From NCBI RefSeq assembly GCF_963921235.1, contig NC_086109.1, forward strand, positions 12,090,001 through 12,154,000: a stretch of 64,000 nt of DNA. Reading direction: 5' to 3'. Positions 1,510 through 45,465 of this stretch are shown piece after piece. Origin of the DNA: Mobula hypostoma (Eukaryota). The position numbers and the translations under genes were made by a program. Under the pieces are notes generated by a model. It did not search any database. It saw only the letters and a list, made by a program, of their open reading frames with translations, and was not told where the DNA came from. Each line of letters starts with the position of its first letter. Position 1 is the stretch's first letter.

Positions 1510-1601
1510 CCCTGTTTTTTCTCTTCAGGTAGCAAAGTGGACAAACAACAAGCAGTATGAGTAGAATCCCAATGACACTGAGCACAGTTGTGTAAGTATG
1601 T
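1510..1601 (-). CDS. Transmembrane exon of Ig-superfamily receptor (HTYTTVLSVIGILLILLVVCPLCYLKRKNR)
   Basis: Acceptor cctattctttaccacag| and donor |gtaggt. The 92-nt exon runs phase 2 to phase 1. It encodes ~20 hydrophobic residues followed by the basic stop-transfer KRKNR, and its entry phase matches the stalk exon. Confidence 0.85.
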
Positions 1602-2325
1602 CTGTGGTAAAGAATAGGATAGGGTCAGTCCTGGTTCACCATATATTCTTAGCCATTTGAAAAGTCTGACATTTACACAGCATTTTTCATGAGCTCAGGA
1701 TGTCTGCAGCTCAGAAAATGAACATTAGACACTGTTGACAATATGGGAAATTGCAACAGCCTATCCGTTCACTCCAAAGTCTCACAAGCAGAAATGTGAT
1801 CATGACCAATGATAGTGATGTTGGTTAAACAGTAACTATTGTCCAGACCATATGGGAATCCTACCATGTTTTTTCACAAACATGTCACTTGAACTGTTGC
1901 ATTAAAGGATTGATTGGTGGTTTCTTCTCTGACAGACAGCATTGCTGACCATGTAGCCGAACCTCTTCTTTGAACGTTTTCCATGGTTTTCTTTATTTTG
2001 TGGCTGTCTGGGCTCTTGGCAAGTCAGGCTGAAGAGCCTGCTGTTCTAATATATAACAATAACTTTATGACTCAGAACATGAGCTTCAACTGCTATGCTT
2101 AAATTATTAAATATTTAGGGTAAGAAAATTATCTTTTTTCTCAGGCTTGATGCATGTACAAGAAAACCAGGAATAATACTCAGTTCCCAATACATGATTT
2201 CATTGCAGTTAATCATGTCAAATGTGCTTAACGCCAGTTAAAGAGAAACAAATTTCTATCCTGACTGGTACTATTCGGAAGCAATAGCAGTGAATCTCCC
2301 TGTTAGAGAGACACTTATACTTTAC

Positions 2326-2404
2326 ATTTTCTCTGATGTAGATTCATCCCCTTGTGTAGTTGTCGTAGATTCTGTCACAGTATTTTCACAGAAATGAATT
2401 GGCC
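2326..2404 (-). CDS. Stalk exon ((G)PIHFCENTVTESTTTTQGDESTSEK)
   Basis: Acceptor ttttattttcttttaacag| and donor |gtaaag. The 79-nt exon runs phase 1 to phase 2 and is Thr/Ser-rich. It joins the C2 exon at 7182 to the TM exon in frame. Confidence 0.8.
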
Positions 2405-3389
2405 CTGTTAAAAGAAAATAAAATCCAATTTTATCTGCTTTGTACTCTTAAAAACAAGAGAGCACAATTGTTAGACCAATAGGTACTTGATCATGGTGGA
2501 TGAATGCTTGCAAACAGTGGTGGGAATTGGACCCCAATCACCGATTGCTGGCAGAGTAATAATGTTACGCTAATTGTGTGCCCAACTACGTTCACATTTG
2601 GATTCTTTCCCATATTCAGGCACCGGCGGTGTGAAGGTACTGCTGGGGAAGTGAAAGGACTTGGACTGAGGGAACTGTAATCCTATATAAGCATGTGTAA
2701 TCATAAGGGAAAGGTCCACCATCAAGCATGACTTTCAAAAGAAATTTGTGAATCTGTTAAATCCAAGGAAATGTGTCATGTTCAGTAAAAGCAGCAAAGC
2801 TGAGTATTAGAAGTAATTTAGAATTCTAAACAAAACAATCGATTAAAACATTGAAAATATAGAACATGAGCAATTTTGCAGGGAATATATACAGTAGGTA
2901 ATGCCCTGGTTCATATTTTTTACTGTTATCTGTATGTATTTCATTTTCTGCTGTTCTGTGGGAGCTGCTTGTTTTCAGCTTATGTTTAGGTTATTGTTGA
3001 AGATAAGAGATGAGGAGAAATGTAAGCCATCCAATTAGGACGGTCCAGTTGAAAGGGAGGTTTCTCTGGTGAGGGACTCTAAGGTTGGGCTTGGGGCTTG
3101 TTTTGTTTGAGAGGAGATGAAGAGAGAAGACGCTGGGGAGAACCGGTCACAGCATACGATCCAGTGGGAGACTGCTTGGATGGATAGCAAGCAACATTTG
3201 GAAGGTGTTGTGTGCTTTCACGTTGACCGAGGGGCCAGCGTGTGAGTGACAGTGAAGTGCAAGATGAGCTCTAACTTGTGCACATTTGACTGTTTAATTA
3301 GAATGGGCCCTTTTCTTTTCATTACTCTTTACTAACCCTTTCGTTAAGATTCATAAATATAATTCCTTTAATTGTATGCAGTGTACTGT

Positions 3390-3960
3390 CTGGAGGCAGC
3401 TTATGTGGAAGTGCTCCAAGGACTTGATGTGACGGCTGTAGGTTACCCAAGCTTCACAGCTATAAAGGAGGGCGGTGACACAGACCGCTTGGTATATGGT
3501 GACCTACGTGGAGGGATGAAGGCTCCTGTTCTGAAAGACTCTAGGACAAAGTCTCCCAAAGGCAACTGATGCCTGTTTATTGCGGCTCTGGATGTCGTTG
3601 TCAATGCCGCTATTCTCAGAGAGAATGCTCCCCAGATATTTGAAAGATGGCACTACTGACAGCTTTTCATCACCAACAGTGAAGAAAGGTAGAGTGGGTG
3701 GGACACTGGTACTCCATTGGCAAACCACTTTTGTCTTGGTGGTATTGACAGTCAGCCCCATCCTGCTGTACGCTCTCACCGCCACAGCAAGGACAGTCTG
3801 AAGATCACAGAGCACAGTCGTCTACATACTGCAGCTCCAGGACCCGCTCTCTATGGAGTTTGGTGGTTGCACGAAGCCTCCTGATGTCAAAGAGGTTGCC
3901 ATCTAATCTGACGTCCACTGCCACACCGCTGCTGTCTTCAATCTCGTTGTGGAGAAGCTT
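3390..3960 (-). mobile_element. RTE-clade LINE fragment
   Basis: ORF 3504-3815 reads MGLTVNTTKTKVVCQ...VPSFKYLGSILSENSGIDNDIQSR...ASVAFGRL, typical of the RTE RT C-terminal region. Confidence 0.8.
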
Positions 3961-7181: not shown

Positions 7182-7499
7182 CCATGCTGTTGACTTCAAT
7201 CACATTTCTGCAGGTGCTGACACTGTTGGAGATGGACACATTGACCCCTTCACTGGACTTTTCTCCTTTAGTATTTGAGGCTTTACAATAATACAGATGA
7301 TTTTTGTATTTTATGGATTGACAATGGAGATCCAGTTTATTGGTATCAGAGATCTTTGAAACCACAGATGGGATCTTTTCATACCATGAGTACTGAATGG
7401 GAAGGGATCCATGGACAGACTCACAGGACACTGACACGGAGTCCACACAACTTGAGTCATTTGTTGGTGAAAATCGAAGCAAAGGAACAGACACAGGTT
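7182..7499 (-). CDS. Ig C2-type domain exon, membrane-proximal (C2-1)
   Basis: Acceptor ttcttttccacag| and donor |gtaagt; 318 nt, phase 1-1, open. Translation PVSVPLL...VSVSCESVHGSLPIQYSWYEK...YYCKASNTKGEKSS shows the canonical Cys/Trp/Cys of FcRL/PECAM-like C2 domains. Confidence 0.92.
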
Positions 7500-7999
7500 C
7501 TGTGGAAAAGAATCAGTGAACATCTGAAAATCAAACACACTGAAGATTTCAGCAGTTCTGTATCTCAACCAGGACCAACCAGTTTGGAATCTCGGCAGCT
7601 CATCTACCTCTCTGTGTCCCTGCGTCCCCCCCATCCGCCTGAACTGCCATGTCTGACATTATCACAGGACTCCAGATCAGGACAGCAGTGACGGCACTGA
7701 GTATGTGTCAGTGTGAAAATCAGAGTTACAATCTCTCTCAGCAGCAAGGAGGCAGTGTTCAGTGGCACCTAACAGGTTGACTTTGGAATGGTAGCATTTG
7801 TATGTGTCCTGGAAAACTTCCCCCATCATGTGAAAGCAGGAAGTTGTCAGATATGTACAAGATGAATGGTGACATTTGGGACAGAGTATAATTGTGATTG
7901 GTTTCAGTGACCTACAGCAGCAAGGGAACCCGTGAGTATTAGTATCGATATGAAGCCAAAAAGGAATCATATGTGACTGGAGAACTAGAAGGACCATAG

Positions 8000-8880
8000 G
8001 CCATAAGACCATACGATATAGGAGCAGAATTAGGCCATTCTGTCCATTGAGTCTGCTCCACCATTCAATCATGGCTGATTTATCATCCTTCTTCATCTAT
8101 TCTCATACGTTCTCTTTGTAACTTTTGATGCCCTTAAGAATCACCCTCTGCTTTAAATATACCCAATGATTTGGTCTCCACAGATACTTGTGGCAATGCA
8201 TTCCACAGATTCACTAGCTTTTGGCTAAATAAATCCCCCTCTCATCTCTCTTTTCAAGGACATACTTTTATTCTATTACTGTGCCCTCTTTAGTCCCAGA
8301 TGCTCGCACTGTAGGAAACCTCCTCTCCACATCCACTGGGCTTTTCAATGCTCGATAGCTTTCCATGAGATCCTCCCTCATTCTTCTAAACACCAAAGAG
8401 TACAGGCCCAGTGCCTTCAGATACTCCTGATACATGAGGGAAGATTGACTTCACCTGGAATTTAATTTCCAGTTTCGTTACACATTCCAAAGACCTACCA
8501 GTTGGTACGTTAATTTATCATTGTAAATTGTCTCATGATTAGGCTAGGGCTAAATCTGGGCATTGCTGGGCGGCAATGCTTGAAGGGCATAATCTACGCT
8601 ATATCTCAATCAATCAATCAATCAATCAATACATAGTTACCTGGATTGGAGTGTATTAGCCATGGACAGAGCTGGAAAAACTTGATTTGTTTTCACTCGA
8701 GCGTAGGAGGCTGACGGGAGACCTGATAGAAGTTTGTAAATTTATAGAAGTCAGAGATAGGGAAGATAGTCAGAATCTCTTTTTCCCAGGGTTGAAATAT
8801 CAAATAATAGTGAGCATAGTCTTAAGATGATCAGGGGAAATTTTAAAGGACATTTGTGACACAAGTTTTTTTTTATACTG
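8000..8880. mobile_element. Cluster: CR1 3' tail (minus), V-SINE fragment with (TCAA)n tail, CR1 fragment (plus)
   Basis: ATAAGACCATA..GGAGCAGAATTAGGCCATTC is a reversed CR1 tail. ACATTCCAAAGAC..GTAAATTGTC is SINE core, with (tcaa)n at 8604-8629. GGAGGCTGACGGGAGACCTGATAGAAG is CR1. A paralogous copy lies at 22130-22387 and 30262-30780. Confidence 0.6.
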
Positions 8881-9509
8881 AGGGTGGTGACTGCAGGGAT
8901 TGTGTCCCATGTTCTCTCTAATTCCATTGCTCTATTTCTCACCAGGAATGGGCTGGGTGTAGAGGCTGGCTGCTGGGAAGTAGATGGTCAATGGGTTCTG
9001 GGGAGTGGATTCCTGGAGCACATTGACAGAGACAAAGAGAGTCAGCATGTGGTAGAGAGGGAAGTGACTGATCCATGAAGCAGGGATGGATAGTGGGAAA
9101 GCCTGCTGTGGGAGAACTGAATGAAATCTGTTTAGCTCTGGAACTGATTCCCTTTTTATGAATTTCAAGGTATTTACACCATGAGAAACACTTGTTTCTC
9201 ATCGACCTGTTAATATCAGGTTATTAAGTTTGGTCTGAATTCAAACCTCTGACAGGGTGACATTTCATACAGTTCAGAGGCAGGAAAATGTGATGAGCCT
9301 CTCACCGGAAATCGGTGTCCTGTCAGTGGGTCAGACTCTGCACTCAATGAGAGCATCATGAGAGGGGTTTCCTCGTTCCTTGACCAGAACCCACAGGACT
9401 CTGCACCACTGTGGAGCCTCAGGATATCCGTGCTGCCCGAACTCCGACCAGGGAAAGCAGGAATCAGACATTTCAGTGGAGACATCAAATCTATATACGA
9501 GAAACCTAC

Positions 9510-9830
9510 CGTCAGAAACTACTACATAAATGTCAAAGGCTGGATGATTGCCAGATGTTGTAATTCCGCATCTGTAAAGTCCTGTATCTCGAGAGACAAG
9601 ATTCTCCATAGTAACAGTAAATATTCCCAGGGATGTGTTATCTCTGATTGTCGTTCTTCCATACTGCTCACTTTGTCCACTTGTATTCACTAACGATGTG
9701 CATTGGCGATCCCACATGCGGCACAAATACTTTGTGTGTGAACGGTACATTGGGGCATAGTGACAATCGATTGTGATCACTCTTCCCACAACTCCTCTTA
9801 CTTTATCTTCTGCCCATAAAGCACCTGAAA
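9510..9830 (-). CDS. Ig V-set domain exon, CD300/pIgR/TREM-like (V1)
   Basis: Tandem acceptors ctccctcag|TTTCAG|GT (9830 or 9824) and donor |gtaggt; phase 1-1, open. Translation SGALWAEDKVRGVVGRVITIDCHY...KYLCRMWDRQC...FTVTMENLVSRDTGLYRCG has the extra C-C' disulfide pair typical of CD300/pIgR. Confidence 0.92.
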
Positions 9831-10318
9831 CTGAGGGAGACGTTCTTCAGAAAATGGACAGGTAAAATCAAATTTACACAAGCAGATTCAAGTTTCAAGA
9901 TTGTGTCATGTCAGTTCCTGTACACAAGTGTAAAGGAGAACAAAATCATTGTTACTTTCGATCTGATGGAGAACAAAAAAACACAATATGAAGAATAGAT
10001 TAAAATTCAAGATGTTTCATTTAAAGCTGTCACTGTGTTCTAAGGAATCTGCCACACTGTCAGTTGGTGTAATTGAATTCCACACTGACTGAGAAGACAA
10101 CAGCATCGTCCCTCATCTCATGCTCCCAGCTTTTCACAAGTAATGATTTTTATTTGATTGGAGTCATCATTGTCACTGCCCACTACTGTCTGGGTGTGTT
10201 TCCATATTTCTGAGTCAATAGATTACTGATCCAGTCCCAATCCAGGCAGGTAAGCACAAGATCAGTGGTGGGTAACTTACTGGAGGTGATTGTGTGAGAC
10301 AGGATCTACCTGAATTTG

Positions 10319-10433
10319 AAAAGGCAAGATCTGATTTGAGATCGTCAACATGAATTTGTGCATAGGAAATCTTCTCTCTAAAAATACAACTGAGTTTTTT
10401 GATGATGGAAGCAGTCAGATTGTGATAGTGAGG
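10319..10433 (+). repeat. Left copy of 115-bp target-site duplication of the L1
   Basis: Matches 14706-14820 with 8 mismatches. The sequence is single-copy at the paralogous empty site 32329-32441. Confidence 0.85.
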
Positions 10434-13400
10434 TTTATTTCTTGGAATGTAAAGGGGCTGAATGGTCCGGTTAAAAGAGCAATAGTTTTCTCTCATCTGA
10501 AACAATTGAAAGCAGATATACTATTTCTACAAGAGACACATTTAAGAGTCGAGGACCATAATAGACTTCGTAAAGCATGGATTAATCAGGTTTTTCATTC
10601 CAGATTTAATAGTAGGTCCAGGGGGGTGGCAATATTAATCACCAAAAGAATGCAGTTCACACCATCTGATGTAATCAGTGACCCTAATGGTCACTTTTAT
10701 TATAGTCTCTGGCTCTCTGTTTCAGATACCTGTTATTTTGGTAAATGTTTATGCTCCTTATTGGGACGATGTCCAATTTGCAAATAAGGTTTTGTCATCA
10801 ATACCTAACCTGAATACACATAAGCTAATCTTTTCCAGAGATTTTAACTGTGCTATTGACCCACTGCTTGATAGGTCTTGCCCTAGGGGAACATTTTCTG
10901 GTATGGCAAATGCCTTCTCGATGTTTATGCAACAAAATGGTTATATGGATCCTTGGAGATTTTTGAATCCACCAGTTAGGCAATTCTCTTTCTTTTCTCA
11001 TGTTCACCATTCCTATTCCAGGCTAGACTATTTCTTTACAGATAACTCCTTTATACCAATGATTAGACAAATTGAATACACTGCTGTACTTATATCTGAT
11101 CACTCACCCATGAAACTGGACCTATGTTTTCCATTAAATGTTAGAAAATGGCCTCTGTGGAGACTTAACCCTCCTTTGCTTTCTAATGAGAAATTTTGTA
11201 GTTATACATCGGCTAACATTGACACATTCTTCGAGACTAACAAAACTGAGTCGGTATCATACTCTTTACTTTGGGAAACTTTAAAAGCTTACTTGAGAGG
11301 TCAAATAATATCTTATACTTCACATGCCAATAAAGAGTGTAGGAAGGAAATGCAATTGTTATTGCAATCTATTTTGGACCTGGATAGAAAATCCTCTGAG
11401 GCACCCACTGCGGAATTATATAAAAGCCGGGTTGATTTGCAAGCGAAGTTTAATCTTCTATCCACAAACCTATCAGAACAATTAATTCTTAAGACACGTG
11501 GCCTTGATTATGAATATGGTGACAAGGCGAGCCGGTTTATGGCTCATCAGTTGAAATGTCAAGCTGCGTCACGACTTATTCCCCAGATAAGAGACACGCA
11601 CCAAAACTTGACAAGCAATCCAAAAGAGCTTAATAACATCTTTGCAACTTTTTATTCCTCTCTGTATGCCTCAGAGTTCCCCTCAGATAAAACAAATATG
11701 GAACGTCTTTTAGATAATTTGGAAATACCAACTCTTGAACCAGAGGAGGTGGAGAACCTAGATCGGGCTCTTGGGCAGGAAGAGATTAATAATGCCATTA
11801 TGGCTATGCAGAGTGGTAAGTCCCCAGGTCCTGATGGTTATCCAATAAAATTTTATAAGAAATTTAAGGATAAGCTCATACCGGTCCTTCTAGAAGTGTT
11901 TCAGGAATCTTTGGAGAACGGCTCCTTACCCCCTGCTCTTTCACAGGCAGCTATTTAACTACTTCTTAAAAAGGACAAGGACCCGATTCAATGTGGATCA
12001 TATCGCCCCATCTCACTTTTGAATGTAGATGTGAAAATTTTGGCTAAAGTGCTTGCATGCCATTTAGAACGTCCCCTTCCCAAGATAATTTCAGACGATC
12101 AAACAGGTCTTACTAAAAATCACTATTCTTTTTTTAATATCCGTCGACTGGCTGATGTGGTTTATTCACCCAGTGATTTTCCAAGTCCAGAGGTTGTTAT
12201 CTCCTTGGACGCGGAGAAGGCGTTTGATAGATTGAAGTGGGTATACTTGTTTAATGTTTTGGAGAAATTTGGATATGGTAGCATATTTATAGCTTGGGTT
12301 AAGCTATTATACCATTCGCCTTTAGCATGTATACAGAGAAATTATTTTTGATCTGACTACTTCCCATTAACACGTGGCACTCGCCAAGGCTGCCCACTGT
12401 CCCCTCTTCTTTTTGCAATTGCAATTGAGCTTCTTTCTATTGCACTTAAGTCAACTACATTATTTCAAGGTGTTAGAAAAGGGGACATGGAACACCCTGT
12501 ATCCCTATATGCTGATGACCTCTTACTTTATGTTAGCGACCCTGTAGGTGGTAGTCCTGCTATTGTGTTATTATTAGGTCAATTTGGAGCTTTCTCTGAC
12601 TATAAACTGAACTTTCAAAAAAGCAAATGCTTTCCCATTAATAACTTGGCCCTACAGATCCGACAGGAATCTTTGCCTTTTCCTTTATCTCAAGATGGTT
12701 TTGTATACCTAGGAATACATATTACTTTCTCTTTTACATCTCTGACTGAAGCTAACTAGTGAAGTTTAAGAGACTGCTAGACAGGTATATGGAGGAATTT
12801 AAGGTGGGGGCTTATATGGGAGGCAGGGTTTGAGGGTCGGCACAACATTGTGGGCTGAAGGGCCTGTACTGTGCTGTACTATGTTCTAACTACAGGCCTC
12901 AGGTTAGCCGAATGAAGGCTGATTTCGAGAGATGGCACAGTTTACCCCCGAAAGATGGCACAGTTTACCCCTTACTATAGCTGGGAGAATTCAGTCAGTG
13001 AAAATGACTATACTTCCTAGATTTCTTTATTTGTTTCAGTGTTTGCCAGTTTTCTTACCCAAGTTATTTTTTAAATCAGTCGACCAAGCTATAACCTCCT
13101 TTATTTGGGAAAATAAGGTCCCAAGGGTTAATAAGCACACTCTCCAAAGAGGTCATGACGTAGATGGAATGGGTCTTCCCAGCTTTATTCATTATTACTG
13201 GGCATCGAACATTCAAAAAGTATTATTTTGGCTTCACCGGCCGGATATAATCTGGTGCCTGCTTGAGTCACGGTCTTGCCACTCCTCGTCTCTCCCAGCT
13301 TTGGTGTATTCTTCCTTACCATTGAAATCCTCTCAATTCACATCTAACCCGGTCGTGCTCTCCACCCTCAAAATTTTTAATCAATTTCGCTGCCACTATA

Positions 13401-14705
13401 AGTTCATATCAGCTTCAGTTTTGGGCCCCATTCATAAAAACCATTTATTTCCTCCCTCCACATTTGATTCAGCTTTCAGACAACGGGGTTTGAATGGTCT
13501 TATGCGCATTAAGGATTTGTATACTGATAACATATTTGATAGTTTTGATAACCTGCTCGGTGAGTATGGCCTTCCGCATAATTATATTTTTAAATACCTG
13601 CAGATTCGCCACTTTGTCAAGGAAAATTTTCCCTCTTTTCCTGATCTACCACCTGCTATCTTATGGGAAAAACTCACTCTTAGCTTTAACAATAAAGGGC
13701 TGATCTCTGAACTATACTCTCAGCTGATGTCTTTGGGAGTTCAAGATCTAAACCAAACTAAGAGTAGGTGGGAGGATGACCTCGGTATGGATCTGGCGGA
13801 GGAATATTGGGCAAAAGTATTGAATAGGGTTCATTTCTCATCATCATGTGCTAGACTGGGGTTCATACAATTTGAAGTTTTACACAGGGTACATTTATGT
13901 AAAGCCAGACTTGCAGACATACACCCTGGGACAGTCGCTGGCTGTGACAGGTGTTCCTTCTCTCCGGCTGGTTTAGTATATGCATTTTGGTCATGCCCTC
14001 GGCTTGATAACTATTGGGCACTGGTTTTTAAAATTATCAGTGAGGTTTTGGGGGTGACACTGAGACCTTGCCCGCTTATAGCTGTATTTGATGTGGCAGA
14101 TGATGATTTGGGTTTAAATGCAAGCCAGTCGGATATCATTGCATTTACATCGCTATTGGCCCGTAGGAGAATTTTGCTGGTTTGGAAATCTGCCAATCCC
14201 CCAACTGCTGCTGCTTGGTTAGAAGATGTAATGTTTTTTCTGAAATTAGAAAAGATTAAATTCAATTTGAGGGGGTCTGTGAAAAAGTTCTATTCGAAAT
14301 GGGGACCTTTCTTATCATATTTTGGGAGTCTTAAGGAATTACCTACCAGTTGAGGGCATTTGATTGTACTTAGGAAGTTGCCTCCCATTTAACAGGCTTA
14401 TAATTTACCTCACAAGGTGGTTGATGAATTGTAAATATGAGTGTATTTTGGATCATCTGACATGTTGCAGATGTGTGTGAGCCGTCGTCTTGAAGTAGTG
14501 TGGGGGTATGGTTGTGAAATGTCCGTACTTGTATTTGTGAATTGTTGTGTTGTAAATATATTAGCTGCCATGATATGTTCGGGGAGGGTGGGTGGCGGGA
14601 GGTTTGTTTTGGGGGTACGATATTAAAGCAAAATGGAGGAAAATGCAATTCATTATATATTCTGTATTGTGTCATTCCTTCAATAAAAATAAAAAAATAA
14701 AAAAG
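10434..14705 (+). mobile_element. L1-clade LINE, 5'-truncated at the start of ORF2, frameshifted
   Basis: APE motifs FISWNVKGLN, FLQETH and YSRLDYF; RT motifs GKSPGPDG, RGTRQGCPLSP and SLYADDLLL; C-terminal CDRC..FWSC; AATAAA and an A-rich tail at 14681-14705. Confidence 0.95.
12759..12886 (+). mobile_element. Short CR1 3'-tail insertion nested in the L1
   Basis: Flanked by TAACTA at 12753-12758 and 12887-12892. Ends GGGCTGAAGGGCCTGTACTGTGCTGTACTATGTTC and interrupts L1 ORF2. Confidence 0.8.
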
Positions 14706-14820
14706 AAAAGGCAAGATCTGATTTGGGATAGTCAACATTATTTTGTGCATGGGAAATCTTCTCTCTAACAATATGACTGAGTTTTTTGATGATGGAAGCA
14801 GTCAGATTGTGATAGTGAGG
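14706..14820 (+). repeat. Right copy of 115-bp target-site duplication
   Basis: Begins immediately after the L1 A-tail and matches 10319-10433. Confidence 0.85.
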
Positions 14821-21695: not shown

Positions 21696-21710
21696 TTGCT
21701 TGTTTAAAGA

Positions 21711-28743: not shown

Positions 28744-28761
28744 ATCCCGGATGAGCCCCCA
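28744..28761 (-). promoter_or_regulatory. Primer binding site complementary to tRNA-Pro
   Basis: Minus strand TGGGGGCTCATCCGGGAT, 4 nt from the 5' LTR. It has one mismatch to the canonical tRNA-Pro PBS TGGGGGCTCGTCCGGGAT. Confidence 0.9.
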
Positions 28762-28765
28762 CAAA

Positions 28766-31848: not shown

Positions 31849-33504
31849 CTGAGGGAGAAAATCTTCAGAAAATCAAATTTACACAATCAGATCCAAGATT
31901 CAAGATTGTTTAATGTCATTTCCTGTACACAAGTGTGAAGGAGAACAAAATCATTGTAACTTTGGATCTGATGGAGAACAAAAAAAAAACACACAATATA
32001 AAGAATAGACTAAAATTAAAGTTGTTTTATTTAAAGCTGTCGCTGTGCTCTAAGTAAGCTGCCACACCATTATTTGGTATAATTGAATTCCACATGGACT
32101 GAGAAGACAAGAGCATCGTCCCTCATCTCGTGCTCCCAGCTCTTCATATGTAGTGATTTTTATTTGATTGGAGTCATCATTGTCACTGCCCACTAATGTC
32201 TCAGTGTGTTTCCACATTTCTGAGTCAATAGATTACTGATCCAGTCCCATTCCAGGCAGGTGAGCACAAGATCAGTGGTGGGTAATTTACTGGAGGTGAT
32301 AGTGTGAGACAGGATCTACCTGAGTTTGAAAAGGCATGATCAAATTTGGGATTGTCAACATGATTTTATGCATGGGAAATCTTCTCTCTAAAACTGACTG
32401 AGTTTTTTGATGATGGAAGCAGTCAGATTGTGATAGTGCGGAGTTGGTTTTCTGACAACATCAGACTTTATCACCGGTGGTGTACCATTGGGATCAGTGC
32501 TGTTATTTATTAACCACTGTTACTTGTCATCGATATGAATAGTTTGTAATGATAATGTAGGTAACATGATTAATAATGTGTCGATAACACTGTAGTGCGG
32601 TGGACGGTGAAAAGAGTTGTTGAAGTTTACAAAGGTACCTGGGAAATGATCCAGTGTTCAGCCCCATTACTCTGTTCCAGCAATGACCCCCCAGTTGAGC
32701 CTGTTCCATCTGCCTGCATTTGACCCGTCTCCCTCTCTTCTCGCTACTACCATCAGGTGGGAGGTGCTGGAGTCTTGGGGCCCACGCCACCAGGTTTGAC
32801 AGCACTTGGTGATCTGCAGCTACCGGGCTCCTGGATTGGCTTCACTCATCTCAGTGTGAACGGACTCTGCAGCTGTGGACTCACTTTCAGGCACTCTGCA
32901 CCTCATGTTCCATGTAGTAATTGTTTACATGTTTTTATTATTTACACCATTCATCCTCTTCTGCACATTAGATGTTTGTCCTTCTTTGTTGTGTGTGGTT
33001 TGTTGTGGATTCTATTGTGTTACTTTGTTTTGTGGGTATCTGCAAAAAGATGAATCTCTTGATTGTTTATGGTATACAGAGTCTGGTAATAAAATTACTT
33101 TGAAGTTGAACTAGGAAAGTGGCCATTGGAACAGGTGATGGAATTGAACTCAGGCATTTTGTGAAATTAAACAAGGACACAATTTACACTGTAGGGAATG
33201 AGGTGTGCAACTACATTGGTCCCTGAAAGTGGCAACACAGGTGGACAAAGTGTTGAACAAGAAGTATGACCGGCTTGCCTTCTTGGAATGTGCATTAAGT
33301 ACAGTTGGAATGCATGTTACAACTATAAAGGACGTTGACAAGATCTCACCTTGTCTACCCTGTACAGTTCCAGAGGAAGGGTGTGATTAAATTAGAGAAG
33401 ATAAAGAAAACATTCACAAAGATACTACTGGAACTGTAGGGTCTGGGTTATCGATAGGCTGGGACAGTTTTCACTGAAGTGAACAGAGCTGATGGGTGAC
33501 CTTA

Positions 33505-36500
33505 TTTTGTTAACTTCTAATTATTTGATTTCTGATATTGTTACTACCGAGTTGATAGTGAATTTCTATTGTATGGAGGAATATCTTGTTTTTTATTTGC
33601 TTTGTATAATTAAGATAGCGGTTTGTTTCCCTGTCTTCATATTATCTGTTGTTCTTTTTACTGTGTCATCTTTTCATGTTCCTTCTCCCCATAATTCCTG
33701 TCTTTTTTTTTGAAGTTCCATTTTCAATTATTTATGTTTGTAATTGACGAATAATTTATATCAATGCTTTTTTTGCATTCATTTTAGAAATCACAATATG
33801 AAGATTATTATAGTACAGTGTTTAATTTTTCTTTTTGGATTTTGGGGTGTTTTCTTTTTAACATATAGCTTTGGAGTTGCCTTCTGGAGAAATGGGGGTA
33901 GATTTAGTATTAGTTCTTAGTTCTCCTTCTAGCCCTTTCTCACTTAGTTTCAGGACTTTATGGGTGGAGGGTGGGGTTTTTTTTGCATTTGTTATTAGGC
34001 TTTTCTGTTGAGCTGATTCAGAACTACAAAGATGTCTGCAGTGTCGCGACTTCCAGTCTCTCTGAATGTTTATTCCTCTTCTGATTTCATGAGTTTACAT
34101 TATGGTTAACTCTTTATATACTAAAGGGTTGACTTTAAATTATGGCTCAGATTTATTAATTTTGTCTCTTGGAATACAAATAGTTTAAACCATCCAATTA
34201 AATGGAAGAAGATTTTTAAAGTATTCCAAAAACTGAATGCTCATATTATTTTTGCTCAAGAAACTCATGTGATGAAAGAGGATAATCAATGTTACTTCAG
34301 GTTTTCGTATGACTAGACGTATCACTCGAACTCTCAGGCCAAAGTGCAAGGAGTTTCAATTTTCATAGATTCCTCAATTACCTTTACTCATCAAGACATT
34401 GTTTCAGACCCAGGTGGTAGATTTTTGTTAATTACTGGGTAACTTTTTAATAACAAATTTGCTATGGTCAATGTTTACGCTCCAAACATGGTTTATCGCA
34501 AATTTTAAAGCATCTATTCACTTCTTTTCCTAATTTAAATGAGTATACATTGATAATGGGTGGTGATTTTAATTGCTGTTTGAATCCCCTCATGGATAGA
34601 TCCATATCTAGGCAGCCTTTTCCGAATAAGTCAGCTACACTTATCAACTCTTTTATGATTGACTCTGGAATTTCAGAAATTTGGAGAATTTTACACCCTA
34701 AGGATAAAGAGTCTTCATTTTTCTCACATTTTTATCATTCTCATTCTCGAATTCACTACTTTTTTATTTATTCTCGTTTAATTCCTTCTGTAAATTGACT
34801 GTAATTATGACATTACTGCCATTTCTGATCATGCTCCATTGAAACTTTCTATCAAGTTAATAGATACTTCTCCCAGTATTAGACAATGGCTATTTAATTC
34901 TAATCTGCTTCAAGACCCGGATTTTGTTAAGTTTATGAAGGAACAGATTGATCTCTTCTTTTCAGCTAATATTATGGAAGAAGTCTCTAACGGGACAGTA
35001 TGGGACTCTTTTAAATCATATATCCGTGGGCAGATTATTTCTTATTCTGTTGGTTTGAAAAAATGTATTAAGAATGAAACACTTTTGTTGGTCAATAAAA
35101 TTAAAGAAATTGATAAGAAATACTCTATTGCTCCTAGTAAGGAGCTTTATAAACAGAGAGTCTAACTTCAAGTGGAACATAGCTTATTATTAACATCCTC
35201 GATTGAAAATCAATTAATGAAAACTGGAAGTGAGCTTTATACACATAGTGACACATTGGGTAAATTAGTCATAGTCATAGTCATACTTTATTGATCCTGA
35301 GAGAAATTTGGTTTCGTTACAGTTGCACCAACCAAGAACAGAGTATAAATATAGCCATAGAAAACCATAAATAATTAAATAATCATATGTAAATTATGCC
35401 AGGAAATAAGTCCAGGACCAGCCTATTGGCTCAGGGTGACTGACCCTCCAAGGGAGGAGTTGTAAAGTTTGGCCACAGGCAGGAATGACTTCCTATGACG
35501 CTCAGTGTTGCATCTCGGCGGAATGAGTCTCTGGCTGAATGTACTCCTGTGCCCAACCAGTACATTATGTAGTGGATGGAAGACATTGTCCAAGATGGCA
35601 TGCAACTTGGACGGCATCCTCTTTTCAGACACCACTGTCAGAGAGTCCAGTTCCATCCCCACAACATCACTGGCCTTACGAATGAGTTTGTTGATCCTGT
35701 TGGTGTCTGCTACCTTCAGCCTGCTGCCCCAGCAGACAACAGCAAACATAATAGCACTGGCCACCACAGACTCGTAAAACATCCTGAGCATCGTGAATTG
35801 ATTATTAGCTAATCAATTGAAAACAGCTTTGGTTAAATGTCAAATTATCAAGATTCGCAAACATGATGACACCTTGACGGTTAATCATGATGAGATAAAC
35901 AAATCTTCTCAAAAATGTTATACTTCAATATCATTCTGAATTTTTTCATGATCCCAACACTCATGACTTTTTAAAGAAATTGAATTTTCTGAAATTATCA
36001 CGCGAAGTATGTTTAACAATAGAAATTCTTATTAGGGATGAAGAAATAATAGCTATTATTTCCTGAATGAATTCTGGCAAAGCACCTGGTCCAGATGGTT
36101 TTACAGTGGAATTTTTAATGTTTTTTTCTTCTACTCTTTCTCCTTGGTTGTCTAGAGTTTTAAAGAAGCAATTAGATTAGGTAAATTACCACAATCATTT
36201 TATGGAGCTCTATTTCTTTAATTCTTAAAAAGAATAAAGATCCTACTGATTGTGCATCATACAGATCGATATCTCTCCTGAATGTAGATTCTAAATTTTT
36301 TTAAAGTATTAGCAACTAGGTTGGAGAAGGTATTACCTCAAATTATTTCTGTGGACCAAACTGGATTTATTAAAAATCATTATTCAACTTCTAATATTAG
36401 GAGTTTAATGAGTATTGTTTATACTCCTTCATTTAGTACTCCAGAATGTGTTATTTCATTAGATACTGAGAAAGCTTTTGACAGAATTGAATGGCCATAT

Positions 36501-38840
36501 TTATTTAGTGTGCGTGAGAAATTTAATTTTAGTTCAATATTTATATCTTGGATTAAAATTGATATATCATACCCCTGTAGCTTTGGTTTTTACTAACGAT
36601 CAAAGATCTTCCTTTTTCCGCTTATCTCAGAGTACTAGGCAGGGATGTCCTCTTACTCCATTATTATTTGATATTGCCCTTGAACCCTTAGCAATTGCTA
36701 TCCGAGACTCACCTAACATTTTTGCTATTACCCGTGCAAATGAAATACATAAGTTATCATTATTTACAGATGATTTGTTATTACACATTTCTAATCCTGA
36801 GAAATGCATTCCCGCTGTTTTATCCTTGTTGGCTCAGTTTAGTAATTTTTCTGGTTACAAATTGAACCTTAATAAGAGTGAACTATTTCCCCAAAATGTG
36901 CAGGTTCTCATTTATGGATGTTTACCATTTAAATTGGTTACCAACTTTTTTTTTACATATTTAGGGGTTAAAACTACAAAAAAGCACAAGGATTTATTTA
37001 AGGCCTTTTTTTTCACCTTTAGTGGATCAGATTAAACTTCTGTTTACTAAATGGTCACCAATGTCTCTATCATTGATAAGTTGGATCAATGCTATCAAGA
37101 TGATTATTTTACCTAAATTTTTATATTTATTTCAAGCAGTACAAATTTTTATTCTGAAATCCTTTTTTGATAATGTTGATTCCAAAATTTCTTCATATAT
37201 ATGGCAGAACAAAAATCTTAGGTTAGGTAAAAGATACTTACAGAAATCTAAAAAGGAGGGGGGATTGGCATTGTCGAATTTTAGATTTTATTATTGGGCA
37301 ATTAATATTCGATATTAAAAATTTTGGTTATGGGACTTAGACGTAACTTCAAGTCCATATTGGGTAAATCTTGAATGTAATTCTTTACAAGGGTTTTCAT
37401 TGGATTCTATTTTAGGGACTTAGCTTCCCTTTACTCTTTCTAAATTGTATTACCAAATGGATAACCCAATAGTAAAATACACTTTATGAATACGGTTTCA
37501 ATTTCAAAAAGTTTTTGGTTTGAATCAGTTTATTCTAGCAAGTCCTATTATATCTAATTTCTTCTTTCAACCCTCTATCATGGATCAAGCCTATTTGGCT
37601 TGGAAAACTAAAGGTATAGTATGATTTTGTGATCTATTTTTGGATAATTGTTTCATGTCCTTTGAACAATTATCTAATAAATATAATTTGCCTAGATCCC
37701 ATTTTTTTTAGATATTTACAGATTAGAAAATTTTTAAATACTGCTCTTCCTACCTTCCCAAATTTATATTCAATGGATATTTTGGAAAAAAAAATTAGAT
37801 TTAAATCCTTTTCAGAAAGGTGTAAAAGCAACTATTTATGAGATGATAATGAAAATACTTCCAGACGTACCTAATAAAGTTAAGACTGATTGTGAAAGGG
37901 AACTTATGATTACTTTACCGATTTAAAAATTGGAAAAAATTTCTTCAATTTGTTAGCTCATCCTCTATATGTGCTAAATATGCATTGATACAGTTTAAAG
38001 TAGTGCATAGGGCTCATATGTCTAAGGATAAATTAGCTCATTATTACTCTCATATAAATCCTGTATGTGATACATGTCACTCTGAGATAGCTTCTTTAAC
38101 TCATATGTTTTGGTCATGTCCTTTTTTGAAAAAATAATATTTTGATATTATTTCAACTGTTCTGAATATTGATTTACAACCTTACCCTATTACTGCAATC
38201 TTTGGGTTACCAATGATAGAATCAATTCATTTAACCTCTTCAGCTCGTCGAATGATTGCATTTCTTACATTAATGGCTAGAAGATCCATTTTGCTGAATT
38301 GGAAAGAGATCAATCCTCCCACACATTTCATTGGTTCTCTCAAACTATGCTGTGTCGAAACTTAGAAAAAATTACAAGTGTTATTCGTGATCCCTCTATT
38401 AAATTCGAAAAGACTTGGAGGCCATTTATTCAATACTTTCGTATGATGTAATTTGACCTTTTCCAAACCTATTCTATTTCTTTTTAATATATGTCGAAAG
38501 GAGCGGAGTCAACAACACTAATGATTCTTTTTTTTTGATGTTACATAACAGCCCATGTCTTTCTTTTCTTTTTTTTTAGTTTAGTTGATTAGTATTGTTT
38601 TGGTTAGTTTTTCTTTTGGAGTATATATATTTTCTTTCTTTTTTCATGTTATATTTTAAAAAATTCTTTTGTATATTATATATGTATCTCCTATGATTGG
38701 GGGATTTAATACCCATGTGTCAACTGGGTTTATATTTAAATATGTTAATTACAACAATATAATCCCAATAATTTTGTATCAATACTATGTTACGTTTATA
38801 ATTTTGAAATGGATAAAAAGATTGGAAAGGAAACAAAGAA
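33505..38840 (+). mobile_element. L1-clade LINE (ORF2 plus upstream spacer), heavily decayed
   Basis: FVSWN (~34150), FAQETH, GKAPGPDG, STRQGCPLTP, SLFTDDLLL and a GAAAG-rich tail at ~38820. It splits a CR1 fragment that resumes at 38841. Confidence 0.9.
35268..35795 (-). mobile_element. Rex1 3' fragment nested in the L1
   Basis: MLRMFYESVVASAIMFAVVCWGSRL..., near-identical to 19825-20350, with a (GTCATA)n tail at 35268-35285. Confidence 0.9.
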
Positions 38841-40544
38841 AGAGGTTTACAAATTAAGAGGGGCAAAGGTATGGTGGATAATCACAGTCTTTATCCCAGG
38901 GTAGGGGAGTTGGAAACCAGATAGCATCCGGTTAAGGTGAGAAGGGAGATTCTTGGAGGGGCAGTGTTTTCCACACAGAGCAGTGCAGTGTGTATGTGGA
39001 AAAGGCTGCCAGAGGAAGAGCTAGAGGTGGGTACACATACAATATTTCAAACAGATTAGGACAAGTTCATGGACAGGAAAGCTCTAGAAGGATACCAGCC
39101 AATTGTGAGGAAATGGGAGAAGCTCAGGAAGACACTGTGGTCAGCATGGACGATTTCAGCTGAAGCACCTGTTTCCATAGCCTATATCTCTATGACTCTG
39201 CTGCATCCTCTCTAAACTGTAACATACTTTTGAAAGGTTAAAATCAGAATTCTATTTCATTGCATTGGTGTGACAGCTTATTGGATCACAGCCAATCATA
39301 TTACAGTTCAATTTCAAAATTCAGAGTATATTTAATGCCCAAGTATGAATACTATATACAGCCTTCAGATTTTCTCTTTATAAGCAGCCACCAAACAAAA
39401 AAAACTATAGAATCCATTAAAAAACACTGTCAAATGCACAATGTGTAGTAAAAAAAATAAATCATGCAAAGAATAAAAGTAAGTAAATAAATTCAGAACT
39501 GAAATTCACAAATGTAAGTCCATAGCCATAAAGCCAATCATAACTGCAGCCAGTTAAGGAGCCATTAATTACAGGCCACCGGCTCAGTTCAGCACAGAGA
39601 CAGGTAAACCTCGTGGAGCAGTAAGCTGAAGACTTGCCCATCCTTTGCATAGGACTGACATTCCTATACAGTTTTACATGGGTTTTGAAAGCTTATTATC
39701 CTGTTCACAGCCATGAAATGTGGCAGACTTGCTCATATCTGTGCATAGACTCAAATAGAAGGTATGGGTTCCCTTCCCGTATCTCGAAGTGAGCGAGGTA
39801 TTTTAATCAGCAACCTGAAACTCAGTTTAAGTAGTCAGTGATTTACTTGGACTGTTCATGAAATTCTAAAGATAGTGATGACCATAAGACAATGGGACCA
39901 TAAGACACAGGAACAGAATTAAACCATTTTGCTCATAGAGTCTGTCCCACCATTCCATCATGGTTGAGTTATTATCCCACTCAATCCCATTCTCCTGATT
40001 TCTCCCCGTAATCTTTGATGCCATTACTAAGCACAAAAATATCGTGCTCCATTTTCAATAAACCCAATTGGTCAGCCTCAAAAACCGTCTGTGGTAATTA
40101 ATTCCACAGATTCAACACCCTCTGGCTAAATAAACTCCTCCTCATCTCCATTCTAATGAATGGAGTCAATACGTTGTACATGTGGAATGCGTGGTGTTTC
40201 TCCTGGGTGGTGCCGTTTCCTCCCACAGGCCACAGACAGAATGGAAAGATTAATTGGTCTTTGTTGATTGTCCTGTGATTAGGATGTAGTTAATCAGGTT
40301 TGTCGAGGGTCGCTGTGCCTGTGTGGCTTGAAGGGCCGGAAGGACCTACTCTGTACTCTATCAGTAAATAAATAAAAGAAAGGAACATCCTTGCTTTCTG
40401 AGGTTGGTTTTTCAGACAAGATTTCCCGATATGGAAAACATATTTTATCAAATCCCTCCAAGTACCCCAAAACCTTGTTCTTAATAATGGACTTGGAGGG
40501 TGGAGCAAAGTCAAGATGGTGCAAAACAGCAACTGCTTTGAAAC

Positions 40545-41095
40545 ATGGACACATAGAAAACCTACAGCACAATACAGGCCCTTCGGCCCACAATGCGATG
40601 CTGAACACGTACATATTTTAGAAGTTACCTTGGGTGACATGTACCTATCTAGGAGTCTCTTAAAAGACCCTATCCACCACTGTCGCTAGCAGCCCATTCC
40701 ACGCACTCACTACTCTCTGCGTAAAAGACTTACCCCTGACATCGCCTCTGTATCTACTTCCAAGAAACTTAAAACTGTGCCCTCTCGTGTTAGCCATTTC
40801 AGCCCTGGGCAAAAGCCTCTGACTATCCACATGATCAATGCCCCTCATCATCTTATACACCTCTATCAGGTCACCTCTTATCCTCCGTCGCTCCAAGGAG
40901 AAAAGACCGAGTTCACTCAACCTATTCTCATAAGGCATGCCTCCCAATCCAGGCAACATCCTTGTAAATCTCCTGTACACCCTTTCTATAGTTTCCACAT
41001 CCTTCCTACAGTGAGGTGACCAGAAACGAGCAGAGTAGTCCAAGTGGGGTCTGACCAGGGTCCTATGTAGCTGCAACATTACCACTTTGCTTGCA
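40545..41095 (-). mobile_element. CR1 LINE 3' fragment (paralog of 17835-18380)
   Basis: ORF 40660-41148 reads RTLVRPHLDYSARFWSP...RGDLIEVYK. Confidence 0.9.
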
Positions 41096-42390
41096 TCTTT
41101 GAGAATGGCTCTATTTCTGTTTTTGATATATGTTTTTTTCCTTATCAAAGTTCTTTGGAAAACTTTGACTCTGACTGGATATTTGCGGGAATGTAACCTG
41201 CTATCAGGGCTTCACCACCGGCCTTAATACCCCAAGGACGCGGCCTGGAAGACAAGCGTGCATTCAGGGTGCCGGAGTTTTGTTGCTCTGGGGACAGTCT
41301 GATTCTCGGCCGGTGCCCCTGACTAAGGCGTCACTGGAGAACATGGAACATGAAACATCGGGAGCAGTGGGTTAGCCGCCGGCTGGGTGTCCTGAGACCT
41401 GAGCCCTGGGGCCAAACCTCGGGGCATGGAGCTCGGAAAAAGCGATGCAACAGCCATTTAACATTATAAATCAATGAGTTGTATGTTTTATGCTCCCTCT
41501 CGCTGAGAAAAAGAGACACCTCTTTTTCTCTTATTAGGGAGAGAGAGTCCCTGTAGTATATTGAATAACTGGGTGAACGAGTAGTCTTTGAGGTACTGCA
41601 AGTCTATGTCTTTATTGATACTTTGCTGCACGCTTGAGTGCTCGGTGGAGGGTGCCAGTGCTTTTTTAGCTGGTGTGGTGAGGCGGGGGGGGGAGGGTCA
41701 TTGCCTTGCTGCTGCTTGTGTATGGGAGGGGGGAGCTGGGGGGGCTTTGGTGTTCTAATGTTTAACAGTCACTCATTCTTTGGGCCACCCCTCTGCTTTC
41801 ATGGATGTTCGCGAAGAAAAAGCTTGTTCTTAATAATGGACTCCAACATCTTCCCAACCACTGATGTCATGCTAACCGGTCTATAATTTCCTTTCTTTTG
41901 CCTCCCTTCCTGCTTAAAGTGTGGAGTGACACTTCTAAATTTCCAGTCCTTGGGAACATTCCAGAGTCTAGTTCTTATTGAAAGTTCACCACATATACCT
42001 CCACAAAGTCTTTCAGAATGGTGGGGTGCAGTCCATCTGGTCCTGGTGACAATCTACCTGCAGACCTGTCCTTCCTTTGGTTTTTATGAGTATCACTGTC
42101 TCACAACTCAACACCTATTCCAGCCTTTTCAAAGCAGAAGGCAGAAGTATGAATGGAATGCTTTCAACTGGATGTGCAAGTCCAACTATGTAAGAGGTGC
42201 TCCACATCTCCATGACGAAGTGACGGACCTAACTGTTCACTACACTTTATTTCTACCCCATGGTCTCTGCAATGTGTAGCTTTTACAAATGTAAAGAAAT
42301 TCCTTATCCTCACTAGAAGTATAAGAGTAGCAGTAACAGAGTAACAAAAAGAAATATTTAAATGTATCCTCCCTTGAAATTAGAACTTAC

Positions 42391-42711
42391 TGGTGCCATT
42401 GATTTCTGTCACATAACTGCAGATCTCTCCGTTGTTGAAGACTGTCACTTTAACTATTGCACTGGATCTTGCTCCAAGCCGATTCGAGGCACGGCAGTAA
42501 TATTGATGGTGCTGCTGGTTGAAGGATTGACAATGTAGAGCCAGTTCATTGGTATCTGAGTTCTTTGGATCACCATGTGAGGATTTTTCATACCATCGGT
42601 ACTGAATGGGAAGGGATCCCTGGAAAGACTCACAGGACACTGACACTGAGCCCCCGAGACGTGACACATATGCTGGTGACTGATACTGAATCACTGGAAC
42701 AGAAACATGTT
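42391..42711 (-). CDS. Ig C2-type domain exon (C2-3)
   Basis: Acceptor ttctttcccacag| and donor |gtaagt; 321 nt, phase 1-1, open. Translation HVSVPVIQY...VSCESFQGSLPIQYRWYE...YYCRASNRLG. Confidence 0.9.
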
Positions 42712-42769
42712 CTGTGGGAAAGAATTAAACATTCAGACACTGAATGAACATCTGAAAATCCAACAGTCT

Positions 42770-43320
42770 TCTGCCACTTTAGTAGATACACCTGTTCAGC
42801 TGCTTGTTAATGCACATACCTAATTAGTCAATCACATGGCAGCAACACAGTCCATAAATGCCTACAGACATGGTCAAGAGGTTTGGTTGTTGTTCAGGCC
42901 AAACATCAGAATGAGGAAGAAATGTGATCTAAGTGACTTTGACCATGAAATAATTGATGGGGCCACATGGGGTAGTTTGAGAATCTCAGAACATACTGAT
43001 CTCCTGGGATTTTCACATACATCTGTCTTGAGAGTTTACAGAGAATGGTGTGAACAACATAAAATAAAACATGCAGAGAGCAGCAATTCTATGAACAAAA
43101 ATGCCTTGTTAATGACAGAATGGCCTGACTGGTTCAAGCTGACAGAAAGGTGACAGGAATTCAAATAACCGGGTGTTATGACAGTGGTGTGCAGAAGAGC
43201 ATCTGAAAATACAACATATCGAACCTGGAAGTGGATGGGACACAGAAGCAGAAGACCAGGAACATTCAATCATTGGCCACTTTATTAGGTGTAGGAGGTA
43301 CCAAATAAAGTTGTTCCTGC
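42770..43320 (+). mobile_element. Tc1/mariner derivative (paralog of 21141-21695)
   Basis: MRKKCDLSDFDHEIIDGATWGSLRISEHTDLLGFSHTSVLRVYREW is a decayed Tc1 HTH region, with TIR-like GCCACTTTA motifs. Confidence 0.75.
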
Positions 43321-43731
43321 TTGTTTAAAGACAGTAATGTGAGATATCTGTCATGTGTTTGCTGTCTTTCTGGAGAAAATGATATTGTGACTGGATTTAG
43401 TGAGGGAAGCATGCGGCATTGATGTAAATGCAGAGATAGTGAGGGATGGACAGGGTGGGGACAAAGATCATGAGACATTTACTTTACTTGCAGATGTAAA
43501 TTAAATCTCCTATTGAAAACTGGTCTTATAATTCCACAGTAATGTGAGATATCTGTTTGGTGGCTTTCAGGAGATAATTAATTTGTGACTGGGTTAAGTG
43601 GCCTACCACACAGAAGGGAACATTTGGCACTGGTATGAATGCAGAGATAGTGAAGGATGGACAATGTCTGGGCAAAGATCAAGAGACACTTACTTTATAG
43701 AAGGCACAATGTTAATCACTGAGAAACCTAC

Positions 43732-44052
43732 CATCAGATACTTGTAGATGTACATTAAATCTCGGATCAGCAACTGCTGTTGTAATCGCACAGCTGTACC
43801 ATCCTGTATCCCTAGAGCGAAGATGCTCTATAGTAACAGTAAATATTCTCTGTTCCGGGTTATCTGTGATTGACACTCGTCCACTCCGTCCGTGTTGCCC
43901 ATTTGTTTCCACTAAAACTGAACAGCGACGAGTCCATCCATGACACCAATACTTTGTGTGTGAGCGGTACGTTGCTTCATAGTAACAATCGATTGTGATC
44001 GCTCTTCCCACAACTCCTCTTACATATTTCTCTGCCCACAATGCACCTGAAA
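43732..44052 (-). CDS. Ig V-set domain exon, CD300/pIgR-like, N-terminal (V3)
   Basis: Tandem acceptors at 44052 and 44046, donor |gtaggt; phase 1-1, open. Canonical ITIDCYY...KYWCHGWTRRC...FTVTIEHL...DTGWYSC. Confidence 0.93.
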
Positions 44053-45425
44053 CTGAGGAAGGCATTTTCAGATTTGAAGGGAACATCTCAATGCAAACAA
44101 ACATTTTTGAACATGACGGTGGAAACAAGTGCAGGTCATGCCCAGACTGTGGTCCATGACACCACAGCCAATGATTTTGGTCTGAGGTGCAGTCAGTGCT
44201 ATTACTGTGTCAGCTGTGTCAGTGCTCTCTCCCCTGTGTCAGTACATTGTGGGTTCACTTCCCACTCCAGAGTCCTGAGCAGAAACCCAGGGCTGACCTT
44301 CCAGTGCAGTATTGAGGGACAGCGCAGTGTTGAACTTTCAGTTACTTCAGAATATGTCAGCCTTTGAAATGTCGAATAAGATCCCAGCTGTTTCATTTGG
44401 GATGCGTCTGTGTCTCAGATTCCAGGGAACTCTAGGATTCAGATGGGGTTGATAGGATCTCTTGAGGCCAATGTCCTGACTTCCTCCCCACTTACAGACA
44501 AATTTATAAACTGCACAAAGAAACCCCTCATAATGTCCGAAGCTGTCCCTTCTAGTTCCAATGGAAATTTTGTATTTTGTACCTGTCAACTACTTGTATG
44601 TGCAGTTAGAAGGTGCTGCAACAGAGGTTGTTACTTTAGTATATAGAAATCTAGTTTGACTTTAAATTCTTTAAAAATGTATTGAGTGTTTAGATCCAAT
44701 CTATTAATTATTTCTGGAACTAAAAACCACATATTGATAATGATAATGATGACTTGCCAGATTGTCAGAATCCCATTTGGATTGGAAAGGCCTTTAAGGA
44801 GAGAAACCTTTCATCCCTGCCCACCTTGGTTTACCTTGGATTCCAGTTCCAGTAATGTTCTTTACTGATTGCCCCACTGAAATGGCCCAGGAAAGACAAT
44901 GATTTCAAGACAATAACGTCAATTGTCATAGTGATCCCTGCAGAGGAGGATCAGATTCCAGCAATGGAAGACCTGATGTTTCCACTTAACAGCCCCAAGG
45001 GGATTTCTCCATCTGGATGTATTCTTCCCTCACCTGCACTATTCCCCTTTTCTCCTGATCTGTTTCAACCTCTCACTCCCCCTCCAAACGTCACCCCTTT
45101 TCTTCCCCATTCCATTTGCATGTTGTGTTTCACCTCTCCTCAGTCCCGAACCACCTAATGGACCCAGTCTCACACCTCCTCCTGTCCTATTTACTTTATC
45201 TCATTCTCCACTCACACTTGATGCAGGGTCTCGATCCAAACTATTGACATTCCCCTCCCCTTGACAGGTGCTGCTTGACCAGTTGAATTCCTCCAGGAGT
45301 GTATTCCCAACTCCAGTTTCCGACATCTTTAGTGTCAACGGGTATTCAAGCATTGTTGTGGATACAGTGTACAACTCTCAAACCAACATTGATTTTGCAA
45401 ATGTCCAGAGCTGTCTGTCAATCAC

Positions 45426-45465
45426 AGGGGAGGAAATCAATCAAAACGAGCAAAGTCCACAGCAT
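45426..45465 (-). CDS. Candidate signal-peptide exon (MLWTLLVLIDFLP)
   Basis: acaaaATG has A at -3. Thirteen codons plus 1 nt end at |gtgatt, phase 1. Splicing to V3 gives MLWTLLVLIDFLPFSGALWA. The donor is weak and the h-region contains an Asp. Confidence 0.55.

Follow-up and report, generated by a model that had tools for sequence, protein, structure and literature searches.

A six-domain receptor gene of the MDIR family in the ray Mobula hypostoma

The MDIRs, or modular domain immune-type receptors, of the clearnose skate, Raja/Rostroraja eglanteria, are those of Cannon et al. (2006, Immunogenetics 58:362), as cited in PMC3031540. MDIR2, MDIR3 and MDIR5 have a V-type immunoglobulin (Ig) domain with an extra cysteine pair and a C2-type domain, resembling those of Fc receptors (FcR), with four conserved cysteines; a leader consensus, a stalk and transmembrane (TM) layout, tails bearing immunoreceptor tyrosine-based inhibitory motifs (ITIMs) and membership of a cartilaginous-fish multigene family complete the picture. 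All of these features are shared by a gene of a myliobatiform ray, Mobula hypostoma, on the minus strand of contig NC_086109.1 (RefSeq assembly GCF_963921235.1, positions 12,090,001 to 12,154,000; this whole stretch of 64,000 nucleotides (nt) is called the window, and positions are counted from its first letter). The domain order of the ray gene is V-C2-V-C2-V-C2, whereas the skate cDNAs encode V-C2 (MDIR2), V-V-C2-V-C2 (MDIR3) and V-C2-V-C2 (MDIR5); MDIRs are said by their describers to range from one to six domains. The locus is one real M. hypostoma gene, encoding a six-domain receptor of the cartilaginous-fish MDIR family. Very probably, it is a single type I receptor gene that passed from four to six Ig domains by intragenic tandem duplication of a C2 and a V exon, with an ITIM-bearing tail encoded beyond the window.

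Because pIgR, CD300 and FCRL each have only one of the two domain types, the gene belongs to none of them in the strict sense. CD300/CMRF35-like receptors also have ITIM-type tails, but consist of a single V domain with a stalk and TM segment and no C2 domain, whereas six Ig domains are present here. The C2 domains of the ray gene align to the repeats of human FCRL5 (PDB 9loc), which is likewise an ITIM-type receptor, but the ectodomains of FCRL proteins are made of C2 domains only, without the CD300/pIgR-type V domain; in the ray gene, domains 1, 3 and 5 are V-set and CD300-like, and the MDIR C2 domain has an extra conserved cysteine pair. A 2014 survey (PMC4016189) found cartilaginous fish to be without homologues of pIgR or FcRL; in contrast, domains homologous to those of pIgR and FCRL5 are abundant in elasmobranchs, within MDIR genes.

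Domain types and relatives

Hidden Markov models gave the domain string VCVCVC for the spliced protein: exons 2, 4 and 6 are Pfam V-set domains, and exons 3, 5 and 7 match Ig_3, Ig_2 and Ig_C17orf99. Among solved structures, the V domain matched pIgR (8e-52, summed over five domains) and CD300/CMRF35-like proteins (1e-18), and the C2 domain matched the repeats of FCRL5 (5e-37, summed). All three V exons carry the pattern C...KY[WSL]C-x6-C...C, in which the second cysteine pair is kept, and in the alignment to pIgR D1 the KYWC-x6-C cysteines fall on its extra pair. With 52 family sequences as input, AlphaFold (AF2) modelled the V1-C2a pair at a mean predicted local distance difference test score (pLDDT) of 90.2. 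In a fold search, the nearest structure for the single V domain was mouse CD300lf (PDB 5ffl, 6h6l), on which it superposed with a root-mean-square deviation of 1.1 A, a target-normalised TM-score of 0.89-0.91 and 38-39% identity, the cysteines of the extra disulfide included.

Relatives were retrieved in two stages: HMMER was run exhaustively with the C2a domain as query, and a four-domain relative then served as query for a word-indexed search. More than 100 elasmobranch proteins were found, among which the clearnose skate is represented by the UniRef entries named "Modular domain immune-type receptor 2, 3 and 5". Single domains are 50-76% identical to MDIR2, MDIR3 or MDIR5 (BLASTP, E 1e-27 to 2e-59), and for the spliced protein, identity is 60% to MDIR5 across 439 amino acids (aa) and 56-60% to MDIR3. 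The 98.2-Mb record that carries the gene holds at least five M. hypostoma paralogues, and dozens more occur in other elasmobranchs. Every MDIR feature that was examined is present: a V domain with a second cysteine pair and an FcR-like C2 domain in the same chain, similarity to the skate cDNAs, a type I TM segment with an ITIM tail (the tail being taken from a RefSeq model, outside the window) and a large multigene family. An earlier note on this DNA, made from the sequence alone, had recognized V domains of the CD300/pIgR group and FcR-like C2 domains, and had pointed to the MDIRs; structure matches, fold search and identities to the skate proteins uphold that assignment.

The same note had wondered whether the architecture was new, which it is not. 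The one RefSeq model listed for the gene (P0152, 948 aa; "polymeric immunoglobulin receptor-like [Mobula hypostoma]") contains all six Ig exons, each matched at 100% identity and arranged as in the window, so the six-domain protein had already been predicted by the NCBI pipeline; it has the same stalk and TM segment, and differs from the nine-exon gene structure described below by a 150-aa N-terminus and an added 94-aa tail. Models with the order V-C2-V-C2-V-C2 exist in at least ten elasmobranch species. Those of Rhinoraja, Leucoraja, Hypanus, Mobula birostris, Chiloscyllium, Mustelus and Heptranchias have a TM segment and most of them ITIM-like motifs, and no TM segment was detected in the six-domain models of Hemitrygon and Pristis. 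M. hypostoma itself also possesses an eight-domain paralogue. Some of the six-domain models are questionable. In trees of the single domains, domain 3 groups with domain 5, and domain 2 with domain 4, within each species (skates, Hypanus, Mobula), a pattern that would fit either repeated independent duplication or concerted evolution.

Two relatives are of particular use for comparison. In Leucoraja erinacea (L001), a whole V-C2-V-C2 gene is present in tandem (1899-14427 versus 18700-38206, 84-94% identical), each copy with its own TM segment and tail; the six-domain model P0164 takes exons from both copies, and the isoform P0196 has four domains. P0164 may be a read-through chimera; the Mobula gene is less ambiguous, since the copying was confined to C2 and V exons. 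Hemitrygon akajei P0005 (597 aa) is 71-75% identical to the Mobula protein and has the same leader, stalk, TM segment and ITIM tail, but is a four-domain V-C2-V-C2 receptor without the extra C2-V pair. P0005 and the other four-domain members look like the pre-duplication architecture.

Exon structure and transcripts

The nine minus-strand exons proposed in the earlier note (Table 1) were reproduced throughout. AG precedes and GT follows each internal exon; the phases run from 0 to 1 in the leader, 1-1 in all six Ig exons, then 1 and finally 2; and the 2134 spliced nucleotides are open in one frame throughout (711 codons, with 1 nt left over). This frame opens with MLWTLLVLIDFLP, followed by FSGALWAEK, and closes with a hydrophobic TM segment and then KRKNR. 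Since the TM exon closes on a GT donor, the gene extends past the window start, and residues 855-948 of the RefSeq model, which form the cytoplasmic tail, have no match inside the window. The exon phases would also allow isoforms of two, four or six domains.

The uniqueness of these exons was examined in the window by blastn (word size 7) and tblastn with the exons themselves, tblastn with 240 proteins of the family, and a scan for the leader-exon pattern. Apart from one exon each for stalk and TM segment, the only family exons recovered were the six Ig exons, and the leader scan returned 45465-45426 alone as a candidate with a phase-1 GT donor, in agreement with the single leader and single TM exon reported earlier. 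Further matches were derived from transposable elements (TEs) or on the wrong strand, save for short basic open reading frames (ORFs). A search of the window for further leader, TM or tail exons lying between one V-C2 pair and the next found none, and three genes each with their own leader and TM exon are thereby rejected.

For the V1, C2a and C2b exons there are RNA contigs, whose depth falls to zero in the adjoining intron bins. The C2a exon is matched with 0 differences in runs X2 and X4, and the C2b exon with 0 differences by contigs of 169 and 199 nt. The 199-nt contig, from run X1, contains the first 79 nt of C2b without mismatch and 120 more letters, 30 of which were compared with the V exons: 0 mismatches to the 3' end of V2 (at 31529), 2 to V3 and 11 to V1. 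This contig is spliced from V2 to C2b, a junction that only the duplication can create. Depths in run X1 are similar for V1 (9.2), the junction (8.1) and C2b (7.8), a crude indication that the six-domain form may be more than a minor product. The proposal of one gene consisting of leader, three V-C2 pairs, stalk and TM segment is thus sustained by the single leader and TM exon, a duplicated unit of C2 and V exons only, the V2-to-C2b junction in RNA and the matching RefSeq model.

Tandem duplication of a C2 and a V exon

Self-comparison of the window resolves two copies, A and B, which are approximately 90% identical overall, introns included, and each of which contains one C2 exon and one V exon and no other part of the gene. 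Their junction at 21980/21981 is clean (...GGTTCAGTGG followed by GTACAAGATG...), and there is no homology between the two outer-breakpoint flanks. The duplication explains why the C2a and C2b exons (91% nucleotide identity) and the V2 and V3 exons (96.9%) form close pairs, and why V1 and C3, with only 72-77% identity to the others, are distant. Since one C2 and one V exon were duplicated, the ancestor had the order V-C2-V-C2. The order of events that we infer is that an ancestral gene of four Ig domains, a layout kept by Hemitrygon P0005, would have undergone a non-homologous tandem duplication of about 10 kb, with breakpoints in the V1-to-C2 intron and the V-to-C3 intron, by which one C2 and one V exon were copied; as every Ig exon is phase 1-1, two domains would have been added in frame. 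The synonymous divergence of V2 and V3 is 0.028 (2 synonymous changes only) versus an intron divergence of about 0.10, and gene conversion of the V exons is not established.

Table 1. Features of the receptor gene and its duplication, by position in the window
Feature	Positions	Strand	Basis
Leader (signal-peptide) exon, MLWTLLVLIDFLP, phase-1 GT donor	45426..45465	-	ATG with A at -3; family leader consensus
Ig domain 1 (V1), V-type, CD300/pIgR-like, phase 1-1	43732..44052	-	Pfam V-set 1.8e-12; PDB pIgR 8e-52, CD300lf 1e-18
Remnant of V-exon 3' end in V1-to-C2a intron; duplicate at 21864-21917	43485..43538	-	blastn/tblastn
Ig domain 2 (C2a), C2-type, FCRL-like, copy B	42391..42711	-	Pfam Ig_3, Ig_C17orf99; PDB FCRL5 5e-37
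Ig domain 3 (V2), V-type, copy B	31528..31848	-	V-set 2.4e-9; 96.9% nt identity to V3 exon
Ig domain 4 (C2b), C2-type, copy A	20770..21090	-	91% nt identity to C2a exon
Ig domain 5 (V3), V-type, copy A	9510..9830	-	V-set 1e-9; 100% identity to RefSeq model residues 582-687
Ig domain 6 (C3), C2-type, membrane-proximal, outside duplication	7182..7499	-	Pfam Ig_C17orf99, Ig_2; 72-75% nt identity to C2a/C2b
Stalk exon	2326..2404	-	AG/GT, in frame; RefSeq model residues 794-820
Transmembrane exon, no charged residue in TM segment, GT donor at end	1510..1601	-	Frame and RefSeq model
Duplication copy B, holds C2a and V2 exons, later enlarged by TE insertions	21981..43601	-	Self-megablast blocks 88-92%, collinear with copy A
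Duplication copy A, holds C2b and V3 exons, later L1-sized insert	7855..21980	-	Self-megablast and breakpoint analysis

The description of the gene as spread over about 44 kb of TEs was confirmed only in part, by the identification of a long terminal repeat (LTR) element, an L1-sized insert and reverse transcriptase (RT) fragments. The LTR retroelement (22388-30273) is in the V2-to-C2b intron and has direct repeats of 167 bp (22387-22553 and 28765-28931), a PNMA-like gag ORF (27587-28636, minus strand) and an RT ORF (25660-26829, minus strand); because it is missing from copy A, it was inserted after the duplication. The L1-sized insert (approximately 10431-14704) is present in copy A only, and about 111 bp of copy B (32328-32438) is matched at both sides of it, amounting to a very long target-site duplication; further RT fragments are located elsewhere in the window.

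Short basic ORFs are found on the minus strand in both C2-to-V introns (15335-15451 and 32957-33079), the one in copy B with an in-frame stop. They resemble (45-49%) the C-terminal tail of Hemitrygon model P0206, which is spliced there straight after a C2 exon, and such an ORF could be an alternative terminal exon yielding a truncated or soluble form. On the plus strand, opposite the gene, two stretches (18095-18244 and 40804-40953) have 70-72% protein identity to the stalk region of the Hypanus sabinus family model P0181; these stretches probably belong to a repeat, exonised or wrongly annotated in H. sabinus.

Rival readings and significance

Several observations weigh against the reading of the locus as one functional six-domain receptor gene. 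The sequencing runs carry the label 'RNA?' and consist of short assembled contigs, and of the three junctions that set the six-domain form apart, V2-to-C2b alone was seen (C2a-to-V2 and C2b-to-V3 are unseen). At the 5' border, contigs end at the V1 acceptor with 12-65 further letters, and the leader-to-V1 junction is unseen. The RefSeq model bypasses the leader 45465-45426; its different N-terminus of 150 aa, from minus-strand exons at approximately 52009-51731 and at 47136-46933, has no signal peptide and matches no Pfam family. The tail of 94 residues, in which VVYTDL, IVYVDV and VTYADI are the three ITIM-like motifs, is known from the RefSeq model alone and lies outside the window. The ratios of nonsynonymous to synonymous substitution (dN/dS) between the duplicates are near 1 (0.87 for C2a/C2b and 1.33, from 11 changes only, for V2/V3). 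Finally, domain 4 has arginine (CGT, 20909-20911, the same codon in an RNA contig) at a site that is cysteine in 70 of 71 family C2 domains, a loss that would leave its presumed partner cysteine unpaired.

As to the 5' end, the leader 45465-45426 fits a consensus common to 43 family members (MLWTLILLIGFLP followed by VSGALWA) and has a good start context, an ATG with A at -3. It suits the family pattern better than the RefSeq N-terminus does and is taken as the true first coding exon. The RefSeq 5' exons (46933-47136 and 51731-52009) lie beside a repeat of very high copy number (46728-46891), and their putative donor is read through, unspliced, by an RNA contig. They are probably an annotation artefact or an alternative 5' untranslated region.

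The dN/dS values near 1, together with the lost cysteine, make some relaxed constraint possible, although such ratios cannot tell relaxed constraint from diversifying selection. A gene in which the duplicated C2-V pair is mostly skipped, so that the main product has four domains and the six-domain form is minor or decaying, would account for the duplicates' dN/dS of about 0.9-1.3 and for the absence of a near-invariant cysteine from the second C2 exon, and could preserve the frame, as all Ig exons are phase 1-1. It is nevertheless unlikely: the X1 depths of the V2-to-C2b junction and of C2b are near that of V1, splice sites and frames are all intact despite approximately 10% divergence, and the six-domain form is the sole RefSeq model. 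The six domains also keep 31-43 of 33-43 family-conserved residues, with 0-2 departures each, which is within the normal spread of the family.

The RefSeq name implies an orthologue of pIgR, which would transport polymeric immunoglobulin across epithelia, and pIgR is indeed the best match of the V domains among solved structures. Yet pIgR is a single-copy orthologue with an ectodomain of V domains only (2-5), whereas the ray gene interleaves its V domains with three FCRL-like C2 domains and has numerous paralogues; by fold, its V domain taken singly lies nearest to CD300lf; and a tail with ITIM-like motifs is typical of inhibitory leukocyte receptors. Orthology to pIgR is accordingly very improbable. 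Least credible of all, to the point of being nearly negligible, is a false merger of two or three separate V-C2 genes by both the earlier note and Gnomon. Leucoraja P0164, which joins exons of two tandem genes, demonstrates that read-through models do occur in the MDIR family, but the duplicated unit of Mobula has no leader, stalk, TM or tail exon, its breakpoints lie in introns around just one C2 and one V exon, and RNA links V2 to C2b across the would-be gene boundary.

The preferred reading, a single MDIR gene enlarged from four to six domains, predicts a receptor with a signal peptide, an ectodomain of the order V-C2-V-C2-V-C2, a stalk, an uncharged TM segment and a tail with three ITIM-like tyrosine motifs. 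Because of the ITIM motifs and the uncharged TM segment, engagement of the ectodomain would be expected to recruit SH2 phosphatases, and the protein may act as an inhibitory receptor of leukocytes. Analogy with CD300 would make lipids candidate ligands, and analogy with pIgR and FCRL would make immunoglobulin one. There is a small chance that a broader set of propositions holds jointly: that MDIR ectodomains grow repeatedly, lineage by lineage, by duplication of C2 and V exons; that the free cysteine of domain 4 alters the receptor, for example through covalent dimerisation; and that these V/C2 hybrids are the missing Fc and polymeric-Ig receptors of cartilaginous fish.

No new kind of receptor is represented by this gene: since 2006 the family has been known, as have both domain types and arrays of several domains, and the six-domain model is in RefSeq. 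What is added here is the history of the duplication, one splice junction, a lost cysteine and a probable error in the 5' annotation, and the public record is amended with respect to the pIgR-like name and the odd N-terminus. Wider interest hinges on the ligands of MDIRs, which are beyond the reach of sequence analysis. For the family, the locus is a clean, dated example of domain gain, in which one intronic tandem duplication acted upon symmetric phase-1 exons.

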